DNA of 64,000 bases. It comes from Anolis carolinensis (taxonomy: Eukaryota). The notes under the pieces were generated by a model. The model did no database searches. It saw only the letters and a list, made by a program, of their open reading frames with translations, and was not told the DNA's origin. The stretch spans positions 3,720,001 through 3,784,000 of the forward strand of contig NW_026943819.1 in the NCBI RefSeq assembly GCF_035594765.1. The letters run 5' to 3'. Within the stretch, counting starts at the first letter, position 1. Every line of letters begins with the position of its first letter. The translations under genes and the position numbers were made by a program. This document shows, piece by piece, positions 48,820-61,842 of the stretch.

Positions 48820-48976
48820 ATGGAAGGGGATTTCACGGGGAAAGAGATGTACCATCTGAATTTTGATCCCAAAGGTTATTTCAACATGTACAAGAGCTTC
48901 GGCCTGAGCGTCTCTCCAGGAAATGATGAGCGGCTGCGCTTCATTCTGGAGCGTCTCCACAAGACATTTGCACTTG
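48820..48976 (+). CDS. NNMT: NNMT-like gene 5, exon 1
   Basis: accATGG; MEGDFTGKEMYHLNFDPKGYFNMY; donor GTGAG at 48977; 157 nt. Confidence 0.9.
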
Positions 48977-50920
48977 GTGAGTGTGACTGGGCTTCTTCTT
49001 CTTCCGTCGGAGTGGAACATTGAGATCCCTGAGATGATCTCAGTGCAGCATTTGCAATGGGTTTGGGTGAGTTCAAGAGATGTTTTGGTCACCTCAACTG
49101 GTGTAGCTCAGCCTTGCCATCATCTTCACCCAGAATAGCAAATGAGGGTGCTGTGGAGGAGGATGAAATGAGGGCTAAACCCAGTTTTAGTATCACCTTT
49201 CATTGGGTCCTTTGGAGGCAAAGGGGTGCATTTCAGAGTTGACTAGCAAGTCCTGTTCATTTCAACTGCTCTACTGGATCTGGGGTTACAACAATAATAA
49301 TACAGTAGAGTCTCACTAATCCAAGCCTCGCTTATCCAAGCCTCTGGATAATCCAAGCCATTTTTGTAGTCAAGGGTTTCAATATATCGTGATATTTTGG
49401 TGCTAAATTCGTAAATACAGTAATTACAACATAACATTCCTGCATATTGAACTCCTTTTTCTGTCAAATTTGTTGTATAACATGAAGTTTTGGTGCTTAA
49501 TTTGTAAAATCATAACCTAATTTGATGTTTAATAGACTTTTCCTTAATCCCTCCTTATCATCCAAGTTATTCGCTTATCCAAGCTTCTGCCGGCCCATTT
49601 AGCTTGGATAAGTGAGACTCTACTGTAATAATAAAAATAGAGTAAAATAAATGTAACAGTAGCAACAATAATAGAGTACAATAATAAATGTAATAATAAT
49701 AGAGAAAAGTAATAAGGTAAGGTGCACCGTATAAATATTGTGAACACGAGGTGACTGATAAAGTGCTGCAAATTCTTGGAAGTGCAAATTGGGATGGGAA
49801 TAGACCCTGTGTCTTTACTGGTAATGCAGCGTTTTGGCGATGCAAGCGGCAGAGTTTTGGGGGGAAGGAGTTGCTAAGCTCATTCATCGCTATGGTAAGT
49901 GCCTAGATTTGAATGGCGACTATGTTGAGAAGTGGTATTTGGGTCTGGCTCTCAACTGCATATGGTAAATGTTTTCTCCTATACTTTGTTCATTTTTAAT
50001 TCCAAAACGTAATCTACTTTCTGGATAGCCCTCGTAATTTGTGGCTGCAGGAATCACAACAGCAACATCTTGGAAGTGGGAGGGAGGGAACGACTCATTA
50101 AGGATTGGAGAAGGAAATTTGTTGAGTCTGTCCAAATGGCCAAGCTCTCCAACAGCTTAAGGGGAGGAAACAAGGAAGGGTTTGTGGGAAAATGAGGACT
50201 GGCCTTTGAGTATTTTTTTTAAAAAGAAGACAAAAGTAGATTTCAAAATAGCCACACGAGGAATGCATTAATGTAAGGGTAAGGATAGAGACGAGTTGCA
50301 TATGGTGTGGTGTCAGAAGGTTCACGGGTGGGAATAAGGAGGTGGTGGGACTGGGGAAATCATAGGTGTATCTCAATGGTTGAATTTTGAAGAGAAAGAG
50401 TTTTTGAAGAGAAAGAAAGAGGGGAGATGTTTTGTTTTTTTTGTGTCGGGAGCAACCAGAGTGAGAGAATTGGCCGTCTGCAAGGACGTTGCCCAGGGGA
50501 CGCCCGGATGTTTTGATGTTTTTACCATCCTTGTGGGAGGCTTCTCTCATGTCCCCGCATGGAGCTGGAGCTGATAGAGGGAGCTCATCCACACTCTCCC
50601 CAGGTGAGATTCGAACCTGGCAGCTTTCAGGTCAGCAACCCAACCTTCAAGTCACTTAGTCCACTACGCCATCTGGGGGCTTCTAGGGGAGATGTTGAAA
50701 GTGAGGAGTGAGTGGTTGGACTTAGCTTTCTGGGAAGAGTGATGGCCGTCATATTAAAGAACCGGGGAGCTAATACTCCCAGGGTTTCTGCACATCAAAG
50801 AGACTGAATTGGTTAGTTGGTCCAAAAGAGACCATAATCTAAATGGCATGGGTCAGGGATGAGGAAGTGGAGAGTTCATCCAAAGAGGCAGGGAATTCTC
50901 ACAGCGTTTCTCAAACACAG

Positions 50921-51128
50921 ATGGCATCCGAGGAGACACCCTGATCGACATCGGGAGCGGTCCCTCCATCTACCAGCTCCTCTCGGCCTGTGAATCCTTC
51001 AAGGAAATCATCGCCAGTGATCTGCTTGAGAAGAACCGGGAGGAGATGCAGAAGTGGCTGAAGAAGGATCCAGAGGCATTCGACTGGACCCCCATGGTGA
51101 AATATGTCTGCCAGCTGGAGGGGGACAG
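50921..51128 (+). CDS. NNMT: NNMT-like gene 5, exon 2
   Basis: Hand-translated: [30 protein letters not shown]...YVCQLEGDR; 208 nt, AG/GT. Confidence 0.93.
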
Positions 51129-58920: not shown

Positions 58921-59101
58921 GAAGTCCACAAAAGCTTTGCACGAAGTCACTACTTTGTAGTTTTTGCTGCCCTGATTCATTACTGTTAAGGACGAACCAT
59001 TATTATTTGTGGACATCACGGCCAGCATTGCAAAAATAAATTGTTGCTTAAAACAAACTGTTTCAAGTTCTGTCCCCAATCCCCCCATTCATTCCTTGCA
59101 G

Positions 59102-59558
59102 GGAGACGTGGCCGGAAAAGCAAGAGAAGCTCAGGAGGACCGTCAAGCAAGTCCTGAAATGCGACGTGACTTTGGCCAACCCTTTCCATCCTTTGGTGGT
59201 CCCTCCGGCCGACTGCGTCCTCTCCAGTTGCTGCCTGGAAGGAGCTTCCAAAGATTTTCCTGCTTATCGGTCAGCCCTGAAGAACGTGGCCTCCCTGGTC
59301 AAACCTGGAGGCCACCTGATCTTAGTGATTCCACTTGAAGCCACCTACTACATGGCTGGGCAAAGCAAGTTCTCCGACTGTTTTGTGAAGCCAGAGATGG
59401 TTAAAGTGGCTGTGAAAGAGGTTGGTTTTGATATTGTATGCTTTGAGAACCTCAACGTGGATTTTCCAGTGGCACTGAGTGATGTCAAGGCTTTTGGTTT
59501 TCTAGTAGCCCAAAAGTGCAACAAAGCCGAGGTGGCCACTGGGAAAGCGAAGGAGTGA
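59102..59558 (+). CDS. NNMT: NNMT-like terminal exon 3b, a duplicate with no exon 1/2 of its own (273-aa isoform if joined to gene 5 exon 2)
   Basis: Same cattccttgcAG acceptor and phase as 3a; ETWPEKQEKLRRTVKQVLKCDV... open to TGA. Confidence 0.85.
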
Positions 59559-61842
59559 TTCTCTGAAGGATTCCTGGAGACATAAGCAGTGTTGTCACGC
59601 TTAAACGTGGTGACAGCTAAATCTGACCCACACAATTGGAGAAAGCTTGTAAATATGTTGTCAAGTCTTTCAGGGTTGCTGTATGTTTTCCGGGCTGTAT
59701 GGCCATGTTCTAGAAGTATTCTCTCCTGATGTTTCGCCCACATCTGTGGCAGGCATCTTCGGAGGTTGTGAGGTATGGAGAAACTAAGCAAGGAAGGTTT
59801 ATATGTACAGTAGAGTCTCACTTATCCAAGCTAAACGGGCCGGCAGAAGCCTGGATAAGCGAATATCTTGGAGAATAAGGAGGGATTAAGGAAAAGCCTA
59901 TTAAACATCAAATTAGGTTATGATTTTACAAATGAAGCACCAAAACATCATATTATACAACAAATTTGACAGAAAAAGTAGTTCAATGCGCAGTAAGGCT
60001 ATGTAGTAATTACTGTATTTACAAATTTAGCACCAAAATATCATGATATGTTGAAAACATTGACTACAAAAATGGCTTGGATTATCCAGAAGCTTGGATA
60101 AGTGAGACTCTACTGTATATCTGTGGAAAGTACAGGGTGAGAGAAGAACTCTTTGTCAGTTGGAGGCCAGTGTGAATGTTGTCGTTAATCACCTTGATTA
60201 GCATTGAATAGCTTCATCTCCTGGCTTCTTCCTGCCTGGGGGCATCCTTTGTTCAGAGTCATTAGCTGCCCCTGGTTGATTCATGTCTGGAACTCCTCTG
60301 TTTTCAGAGTGTTGCTTCTTATTTACTGTTCTGATTTTTGAGTTTTTTTAAAACAAAGGACGCCCCCCAGGCTGGAAGAAGCCAGGAGATGAAGCTATTC
60401 AATGCTTCATCTCTGGGTTGTGGTGCAGACTGGTGAGCAGCCTGCTGCAATAAATCACTCTGACCATGAGGTCATGAGTTCGTGGCGGGGTGAGCACCCG
60501 TCAATTAAAAAAAAATAAAAAAATAGCCCCTGCTTGTTGCTGACCTAGCAACCCAAAGGATAGTTGCATCTATCAAGTAGGAAATAAGGTACCACTTATA
60601 AAAGTGGGGAGGCAAATTTAACTAATTTACGATGTTGGAATGAGGAAGTGCCGTCACAGTGGATGATGAAGCAGCTGCTCCCCCTTGTGGCCAGAATCGA
60701 ACATCCCCTCAAGAGAAGGTTAAATTGCCTCTGGGTCTGTCTCTGTCTCAGTTCTATGTGTATTTGGGCATTGAATGTTTGCCCTATATGTATATAATGT
60801 GATCCGCCCTGAGAAGGGTGGAACAGAAATACTGTAAATAAATAAATAATAAACAATCAAGGTGATTAACTACAACATTCACACTGGCCTCCAACTGACA
60901 AAGAATTCTTCTCTCATTCTGGACTTTCCACAGATATATATAAACCTTCCTTGCTTAGTTTCTCCATACCTCACAACCTCTGAGGATGCCTGCCACAGAT
61001 GTGGGTGAAACGCCAGGAGAGAATATTTCTGGAACATGGCCAGACAACCCGGAAAACATACAACAACCCAATGCTTTTTCAAATAAGCTGGGCATCACCG
61101 AGTCCCCAAGCTAGTATAATATATTAACGGGGGTTTTTTGCTTCAAAAAAAGCTAGCATGGAAAGTTGGGATTCTGTGCCTTTATTTTGATTTGATTGAT
61201 ATCCCTTCTTTTCCCCAAAGCAGCTTGCAAAACAAATTGAAATTGAGAGATCCACAAAGGGTTTACACCAAGTTATTTTAGTTTGTCTCCCCTTCGTGGT
61301 TTTTGCTGCCCTGAAATAAAGCTAACTCCTCTCTGTTCCTAATCCATTCATATTAAAAGCCAACCAGTTCTAGTTCTCAAAAAAACGCTGTTTGCTTCTG
61401 CACTTATCAGACAACGTGACTCATATTTCACTAATAAAATGTTGCTCAAAACACTCCATTTGAAATCCTTGAAAACACAATCTGTCCAAAAAAAACAACA
61501 ACTCAAAAGAGCCACAACGAGAGATGGAAACATAGCATTGGGAAGCTCACCTTGCATCCTTGGTTTCCATCTTTGCTTGGTGATACCTTTGGTCATCCAA
61601 GAACAATGTTTTTCCAATAGGAATATTTGGCATCAGTATGAAGCAAAGCGCAGCGTTGCCAGTGCAATTTGTTGTTGAACTTTTGCTATAATTTATTTTA
61701 TTTATTACAGCATTTCTACCCCGCCCTTCTCACCCAGTACGTGGACTCAGGGCGGCTTACAATATAAAACACATATAATAATATTTCAACTCGATTTAAA
61801 ATTAAATTACATTAAAAACATTCATAAACACACATATAAATA

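Follow-up and report, generated by a model that had tools for sequence, protein, structure and literature searches.

A methyltransferase gene of the NNMT/INMT family in Anolis carolinensis with two homologous candidate alternative last exons

We examined a window of 64,000 nucleotides from Anolis carolinensis (contig NW_026943819.1, positions 3,720,001 to 3,784,000 of the forward strand); all positions given without a locus name refer to this window. The subject of this report is gene E, a gene of the NNMT/INMT methyltransferase family in which a single exon 1 and a single exon 2 are followed by two homologous terminal exons, designated 3a and 3b. Judging from the architecture of the locus, there is a somewhat better than even chance that gene E uses 3a and 3b as alternative last exons and gives two enzymes with different substrate pockets. 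A preliminary description of this DNA had proposed one gene with a constant N-terminal half and two intact homologous terminal exons, and this proposal is supported by the architecture in A. carolinensis and also in Anolis sagrei.

First, the exons of gene E were delimited and joined. The coding part of exon 1 (48796-48976, plus strand) starts at the RefSeq start codon ATG 48796 (MFCGLQGT-), contains a second in-frame ATG at 48820, and ends in phase 1 before the GT donor at 48977-48978. Its peptide corresponds to residues 1-60 of the RefSeq protein XP_062817286.1, and the upstream ATG is kept in both A. sagrei proteins. Exon 2 (50921-51128, plus strand) lies between the acceptor AG at 50919-50920 and the donor GT at 51129-51130, carries motif I for binding of S-adenosylmethionine (SAM), and matches the profile PF01234 at positions 56-121 (E=2.4e-30, 106 bits). 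The coding part of exon 3a (56584-57013, plus strand) consists of 142 codons and a split codon and ends with the stop codon TAG at 57011-57013, and that of exon 3b (59102-59558, plus strand) consists of 151 codons and a split codon and ends with TGA at 59556-59558. Both exons matched PF01234, 3a at positions 123-261 (E=4.6e-37, 128 bits) and 3b with E=1.6e-34 and 120 bits. When exons 1 and 2 were translated by script with either 56584-57013 or 59102-59558, the frame was open in both cases, giving 264 codons (3a) or 273 codons (3b) from ATG 48820 and 272 or 281 amino acids, respectively, from ATG 48796. Every structural statement of the preliminary description, including two intact last exons after exons 1 and 2 with the same phase, the same acceptor and products of 264 and 273 amino acids, was confirmed. 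The product of the exon 2-to-3b junction is already in the RefSeq annotation: XP_062817286.1 (281 amino acids) is an exact piecewise match to exon 1 from ATG 48796, exon 2 and 3b, the last of which supplies residues 131-281. An AT-rich repeat of 12-13 bp was detected at 52192-52231, between exon 2 and 3a, by Tandem Repeats Finder (TRF).

Subsequently, the relationship between the two terminal exons was examined. The window holds six copies of exon 3 and five sets of exons 1 and 2 according to tblastn, and the additional exon is therefore not a matter of chance. The acceptors of 3a and 3b are identical (cattccttgcAG/GGAGA, with the slash at the exon border), and the 3b acceptor is intact together with its polypyrimidine tract. 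The two exons share 64% identity over 142 residues at the protein level, aligned without gaps and with a synonymous divergence (dS) of about 0.5, and 77.7% identity at the DNA level (56565-57023 against 59083-59541), where the similarity begins only 19 nt upstream of the acceptor. The presumed 3' untranslated region (3'UTR) of 3a (57014-59060, plus strand) has AATAAA at 59035-59040, about 60 nt upstream of the 3b acceptor, and a signal scan found neither AATAAA nor ATTAAA in this 3'UTR before 59035. The presumed 3'UTR of 3b (59559-61340, plus strand) is homologous to that of 3a, has AATAAA at 61315-61320, and includes a transposon insertion at 59655-61148. In these 3'UTRs, 57185-57200 matches 61179-61194 and 58960-58975 matches 61299-61314, and more blocks could be aligned after two insertions were removed. 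The blocks common to 3a and 3b were not found in the 3'UTRs of genes A-D, the other family members in the window, and a single clade of 3a and 3b on the exon-3 tree was not rejected (AU test, p=0.52). Taken together, the degree of identity, the 3'UTR blocks found only in 3a and 3b, and the tree indicate that 3a and 3b are homologous exons that arose by local tandem duplication of exon 3. The DNA similarity and the 3'UTR alignment further indicate that the duplicated unit ran from the end of intron 2 through exon 3 and the 3'UTR and included the polyadenylation signal; the earlier suggestion that the unit takes in the 3'UTR, with AATAAA at 59035 and 61315, was thus borne out by the block alignment. 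As is characteristic of alternative last exons, each of the two terminal exons of gene E has an acceptor that looks functional, a polyadenylation signal of its own and an open frame, in a phase common to both. The possibility that 3b belongs as a 3' end to some other paralogue was also considered and was rejected, as the 3b UTR resembles the 3a UTR only.

Two local differences from A. sagrei were seen within these exons. At 59529-59558, the ancestral stop codon of 3b is gone in A. carolinensis (GAG against TAG in both A. sagrei copies), which adds nine codons (EVATGKAKE); the TGA that ends this extension is also in frame in A. sagrei. At 56602-56604 and 59120-59122, 3a and 3b of A. carolinensis both have CAA (Q, in EKQEKL), and E is found at this position in all three A. 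sagrei exons, in gene D and in most paralogues. The common CAA may reflect a short gene-conversion tract within A. carolinensis or a parallel change.

We next describe the family membership of gene E and the residues of its pocket. The RefSeq protein scored 270 bits over positions 3-261 of PF01234 (gathering cut-off 25), and gene E, which matches this profile exon by exon, also matches the solved structures of NNMT, INMT and PNMT. SAM motif I (DxGxGP) is present in exon 2, and the post-motif L(P/K)CDVT is present in both 3a and 3b. In human NNMT, an engineering study counted twelve residues as active-site positions (PMC12402838), and exon 3 carries 10 of these 12, in line with the earlier statement that exon 3 supplies most of the acceptor-pocket residues. 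The ten positions were mapped through a mammalian NNMT with human numbering. In 3a, they are 164 Y, 167 E, 197 M, 198 A, 201 G, 204 Y, 213 C, 242 M, 247 A and 249 G; in 3b, they are 164 C, 167 E, 197 I, 198 P, 201 A, 204 Y, 213 D, 242 F, 247 S and 249 V. The two exons differ at 8 of the 10 pocket positions as against 43 of 132 elsewhere (Fisher p=0.004). Between A. carolinensis and A. sagrei, all ten pocket residues agree in 3a, and nine and eight of ten agree in the two comparisons of 3b. These two distinct and conserved signatures support the reading of exon 3 as a variable pocket exon, and the residues suggest that the 3a and 3b forms may differ in substrate specificity.

D197 and Y20 of human NNMT are reported to be required for the methylation of nicotinamide (PMC8956669). 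Y20 and Y24 were located in exon 1 of gene E by eye against the human motif, and position 197 is occupied by M in 3a and by I in 3b. As D197 is absent from both, it is unlikely that either form is a true nicotinamide methyltransferase, and the RefSeq name 'nicotinamide N-methyltransferase' probably does not describe the real activity. No paper combining Anolis and NNMT was found in a literature search.

The comparison with A. sagrei was made at two loci (L001 and L003) of one assembly. The first gene (copy 1) has exon 1, exon 2, 3a, a spacer of 355 bp and an intact open reading frame (ORF) of 3b. It is annotated with 3a (XP_060643707), to whose terminal exon the A. carolinensis 3a is 82% identical, and its 3b is unannotated. 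ATTAAA lies close to the end of the 355-bp spacer, and the region of this ancestral ATTAAA is mutated in A. carolinensis. At the 3b acceptor of copy 1 (L001 3244-3283), this one assembly has ttgcaA/GG instead of ttgcAG/GG, and use of the neighbouring AG would shift the frame. The second gene (copy 2) is complete, lies 6.3 kb downstream of the first and has its own exons 1 and 2. Copy 2 is without 3a, its terminal exon is of the 3b type (XP_060643562), and its intron 2 keeps a remnant of the 3a-3b spacer (L001 15031-15174).

To place the A. sagrei duplication in time, we counted singletons, that is, the odd one out among A. carolinensis, copy 1 and copy 2 in the same alignment columns. In that order, the counts were 51, 37 and 37 in the 3b region, 57, 25 and 35 in the promoter and exon 1, and 35, 33 and 30 in the exon 2 region. 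These counts show the two A. sagrei copies to be closest to each other, which places the duplication after the species split; the copies arose at roughly four fifths of the divergence between A. carolinensis and A. sagrei. It follows that 3a and 3b were both present in the common ancestor, behind a single exon 1 and a single exon 2. The comparison thus indicates that the architecture with both 3a and 3b is real and ancestral to the two species. A different history, in which the A. carolinensis 3b is the orthologue of copy 2 and was joined to gene E by a fusion deletion, was hinted at by synonymous distances and was rejected on the matched-column counts. In Sceloporus, a single exon 3 was seen at the one locus examined, whose orthology to gene E is not established; the neighbour of that locus, a CD225 gene, was not found downstream in A. 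carolinensis.

Between 3a and 3b, A. carolinensis carries an insertion. Window positions 56502-57222 and 58921-59654 are contiguous in A. sagrei (L001 2418-3129 and 3125-3835), and thus 57224-58920 (plus strand) is an A. carolinensis-specific insertion into the old spacer, within the 3'UTR of 3a. It consists of a tandem array of 147-bp units (57233-58831, 10.9 copies, 92% matches, higher-order period of 437 bp by TRF) and a unique tail of 89 nt; neither the array unit nor the tail was found elsewhere in the window or in the compared A. sagrei and Sceloporus loci. The 5' edge of the insertion creates a GT donor at 57224-57225, which is used by an old Gnomon model, XP_008123424.1. The first coding exon of this model (57159-57223, plus strand) starts at an ATG inside the 3'UTR of 3a, encodes the N-terminus MTWILGMVDLYFDLHCKLISK(L), and is joined in the model to 59102. 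The model comes from an older, independent assembly, and it links the 3a UTR to 3b in the same manner as rAnoCar3.1. The second insertion, a composite transposon at 59655-61148 (plus strand) in the 3'UTR of 3b, is likewise specific to A. carolinensis, with A. sagrei contiguous across the site. The block has inverted ends (59673-59807 against 61069-60935) and a nested SINE-like element of about 300 bp; at least ten copies of this element, 88-95% identical, occur in the window, among them those at 38061-38364, 49324-49635 and 28033-28333.

No remnant of exon 1 or exon 2 was detected by tblastn (E<=10) between 3a and 3b or in the 10 kb downstream. The absence of these exons between 3a and 3b, already noted in the preliminary description, agrees with the A. 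sagrei orthologue, in which 3a and 3b lie 355 bp apart. The same description had named an exon 1 or 2 collapsed within the 147-bp array as fatal to its proposal; this did not materialise, as the A. sagrei spacer is free of exons.

Constraint on the exons was examined in two ways. Between A. carolinensis and A. sagrei, the 860 exonic nt of 3a and 3b are free of indels, whereas 16 indel events were counted in 1056 nt of the noncoding sequence around them (P=2e-6). Furthermore, the ratio of nonsynonymous to synonymous rates (dN/dS, omega), a check that the preliminary description had asked for, was estimated on each branch by a codon-model fit on five sequences. The unannotated 3b of A. sagrei copy 1 had an omega of 0.16 (p=1e-4 against neutrality) and was the only branch that departed from 1. 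This value indicates that 3b has been translated in the A. sagrei lineage, which requires splicing from exon 2. Annotated A. sagrei exons were also indistinguishable from 1 (0.96 for 3a and 0.84 for the 3b of copy 2), as were the A. carolinensis exons; since the family evolves near an omega of 1 (annotated exons 0.8-1.0), dN/dS, whether estimated pairwise or by branch, is uninformative either way for A. carolinensis. As for the present state of A. sagrei, copy 2 has lost 3a, and copy 1 has AA at the 3b acceptor, yet its 3b ORF is intact and evolves at the low omega given above, in the one assembly compared. An AA acceptor beside such constraint would point to a loss of very recent date, to a polymorphism or to an error in the assembly.

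Relative to proteins of the older A. carolinensis assembly, we found two amino-acid differences in 3a (56585-57010, VR against MC) and one in 3b (59103-59555, F against S). Three amino-acid differences between two assemblies of the same species point to high nonsynonymous polymorphism, which fits the near-neutral omega of the family.

Signs of expression were sought in a search of sequencing runs. Twenty runs from seven studies hold 0.71-0.91 of the sampled 3b words. Eight of the 3b-holding runs have only 41-89 million letters, and small runs hold 0.88-0.91 of the 3b words, which is too many for low-coverage whole-genome DNA. In one study, the runs of another sample hold next to no 3b words; in a second study, this is true of another run from the same sample. 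As a sign of expression, the word content of these runs is suggestive only.

Several observations weigh against the use of both exons in A. carolinensis. The protein collection contains no full-length A. carolinensis protein with 3a, the only entry being the Ensembl fragment H9G9B1, which is exon 3a alone. RefSeq gives one product per gene, with 3b in A. carolinensis and with 3a in A. sagrei copy 1. None of the 3b-holding runs is on record as RNA, so that to label them RNA is a guess. The A. carolinensis omegas were 1.04 for 3b and 0.50 for 3a, neither of which can be distinguished from 1, and the intact frame of the A. carolinensis 3b is by itself modest evidence (probability of no indel about 0.04, of no stop about 0.4-0.5). 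In addition, relaxed constraint could account for each of three changes, namely the 1.7-kb insertion into the UTR of 3a, the lost ancestral stop of 3b and the transposable element in the UTR of 3b.

From these data, the following mechanism can be proposed. In an old local tandem duplication, a segment would have been copied that began a few dozen bases before the end of intron 2, extended through exon 3 and the 3'UTR, and included the polyadenylation signal. The constant exons 1 and 2, which hold the SAM-binding half together with Y20 and Y24, would be common to both products. Exon 2 would be spliced either to the proximal acceptor of 3a, in which case the mRNA would end near 59055 after AATAAA 59035, or, with 3a skipped, to the identical distal acceptor of 3b, in which case it would end near 61335 after AATAAA 61315. 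The predicted products of 272 and 281 amino acids would have the same cofactor half and would differ in most of the acceptor-pocket residues. With about 60 nt between the 3a polyadenylation signal and the 3b acceptor downstream of it, acceptor selection and polyadenylation would be coupled in this choice. With the array, the presumed 3'UTR of 3a has grown from about 0.3 kb to about 2 kb, and the GT donor at 57224 has arisen; speculatively, the longer UTR and the new donor could favour 3b or give read-through RNAs of 3a and 3b. On the sequence evidence, we infer that both junctions are used in present-day A. carolinensis. In A. sagrei, the whole unit was duplicated soon after the species split and would now be undergoing partition, copy 2 having deleted 3a and using 3b. 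Such a pattern corresponds to the partition of splice forms after gene duplication that has been described for other genes (PMC4417111, PMC4494069). The full statement, that A. carolinensis keeps the ancestral design of two pocket exons giving two specificities and that A. sagrei is converting this design into two genes by complementary losses in progress, is made tentatively, with chances that we put slightly short of even.

Of the alternatives, the one that fares best, although we regard it as unlikely, is that only 3b is used in present-day A. carolinensis. In that case, 3a would be intact but skipped; the skipping may date from the 1.7-kb array insertion, which would have made the 3'UTR of 3a longer and the definition of the terminal exon weaker. 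The gene would make one enzyme, and 3a would be heading to decay. This would be in line with the sole RefSeq product, which joins exons 1 and 2 to 3b with no 3a isoform in the protein collection, with the restriction of the array insertion to A. carolinensis and the mutated ancestral ATTAAA region, and with an A. carolinensis 3a omega that is not significantly below 1. However, the 3a acceptor is upstream of that of 3b and identical to it, so that full skipping would need a silencer, and none was seen. The 3a ORF is also intact, its pocket is the same as that of the A. sagrei 3a at ten of ten residues, and its protein branch is as long as that of the annotated A. sagrei exon (0.11 each).

Still less probable, in our view, is that only 3a is translated and that 3b is a relic which reaches RNA, if at all, in a 3'UTR or a read-through transcript, for example through a 57223^59102 junction, in which case the stop codon of 3a would precede an exon junction. 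On this reading, the RefSeq model with 3b would have been projected from the A. sagrei copy-2 protein. The old Gnomon model does join the 3a UTR to 3b, and the A. carolinensis 3b combines an omega of about 1 with the loss of its ancestral stop, a 1.5-kb transposable element in its UTR and the lack of any 3b-holding run on record as RNA. On the other hand, since the exon duplication, at a dS of about 0.5, the frame of 3b has stayed free of gaps and its pocket signature has been conserved, and its acceptor and polypyrimidine tract are intact in A. carolinensis. Moreover, the equally unannotated A. sagrei 3b has an omega of 0.16, and copy 2 of A. sagrei has a 3b-type exon as its sole terminal exon.

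Finally, tandem arrays are prone to collapse, and in A. sagrei a 3b-type exon does belong to a second, complete gene. An assembly artefact, in which a second gene has lost its exons 1 and 2 to collapse of the 147-bp array and 3b would belong to that separate complete gene, is nevertheless highly improbable and was rejected on the contiguity of the A. sagrei spacer and on the older-assembly linkage: the flanks of the array are contiguous in copy 1 and in the spacer remnant of copy 2, which points to an ancestral spacer without exons, copy 1 itself carries 3a and then 3b, the long-read contig is without N here, the older assembly gave the same linkage, and no exon 1 or 2 lies within 10 kb downstream.

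Gene E belongs to a cluster. The window derives from the A. carolinensis assembly rAnoCar3.1 (GCA_035594765.1, JAWQEF010000008.1), with 0 mismatches over the 25,205 nt compared; the locus compared with the assembly corresponds to window positions 38796-69558, and two N runs (28419-28555 and 35129-35258) lie outside it. By tblastn with exon peptides, five three-exon genes of the NNMT/PNMT/TEMT family were found in the window. Genes A and B are on the plus strand, with exons 1, 2 and 3 at 10914, 13597 and 15383 and at 18585, 21873 and 27008, respectively. Genes C and D are on the minus strand, with their exons at 38952, 36962 and 32576 and at 46683, 45206 and 43746, respectively. For gene E, on the plus strand, the exon positions in this search were 48820, 50921 and 56584, with the additional exon 3 at 59102-59558. 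Genes A and B (10914-27424) form a strongly divergent pair in the cluster, with a stem branch of 0.81 on the exon-3 tree, and their pocket residues differ from those of the remaining copies. Genes D and E are arranged head to head (46683-48796), their start codons being about 2.1 kb apart. In A. sagrei, unlike this arrangement, the gene upstream of the gene E orthologue is on the same strand, which indicates that the cluster was rearranged between the two anoles.

Gene E falls in a known class, that of alternatively spliced homologous exons, here terminal ones, and represents no new principle. In the tandem-duplicated, alternatively spliced homologous exons described by Lambert et al. 2015 (PMC4417111) and Abascal et al. 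2015 (PMC4494069), there is likewise a local tandem duplication with the same phase and length and one exon per mRNA, as well as gene duplication followed by complementary loss, to which the loss of 3a from A. sagrei copy 2 and the mutated 3b acceptor of copy 1 correspond. Gene E differs from these systems, and from a classical internal mutually exclusive pair, in the terminal position of its exons: 3a and 3b each have a 3'UTR and a polyadenylation signal of their own, and splicing would thus be coupled to 3'-end formation.

Human NNMT, INMT and PNMT (PDB 2iip/3rod, 2a14 and 1hnn, respectively) share with gene E the PF01234 domain, the three-exon layout and Y20/Y24 in exon 1. Identity to human NNMT is about 50% over exon 3 (E=1e-36 to 1e-40); the difference lies in the pocket, where D197 is replaced by M (3a) or I (3b) and at most two of the ten exon-3 positions match.

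The preliminary description had also likened gene E to a UGT1A cassette. UGT1A has many variable first exons at the 5' end, each with its own promoter. Gene E resembles it, by analogy, as a small-molecule conjugating enzyme with a common cofactor-binding half and an alternative homologous exon for the acceptor substrate. It differs in having two variable last exons and one promoter, with selection that would act through the choice of acceptor and polyadenylation site; with two exons, no series and no exon-specific promoters, the likeness does not extend to a cassette and is a functional analogy only. In CYP4F3 (exon 3/4) and PKM (exon 9/10), internal mutually exclusive exons change the properties of the enzyme, and their tissue-specific use has been shown experimentally. 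The common feature would be that swapping one homologous exon changes the properties of a single-gene enzyme, whereas the exons of gene E are terminal and known from their sequence.

Small molecules are the substrates of the NNMT/INMT family, which has grown in anoles to a large tandem cluster evolving near an omega of 1. Whole-gene duplication is the usual route to a new specificity, and beside it stands a cheaper route, the duplication of only the last exon, which encodes the pocket; the two anole species show both routes turning into each other. Should both isoforms be made, the A. carolinensis annotation would miss one enzyme, that with 3a. The A. sagrei annotation lacks the 3b of copy 1, an exon that is clearly under purifying selection. 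The value of the locus lies in its illustration, across two species, of the partition of isoforms into genes. If the ancestral two-pocket-exon design is truly kept in A. carolinensis and is being divided in A. sagrei, the species pair would offer an example, with a date and open to test, of how isoforms are partitioned into paralogues in a fast-evolving family of small-molecule methyltransferases.

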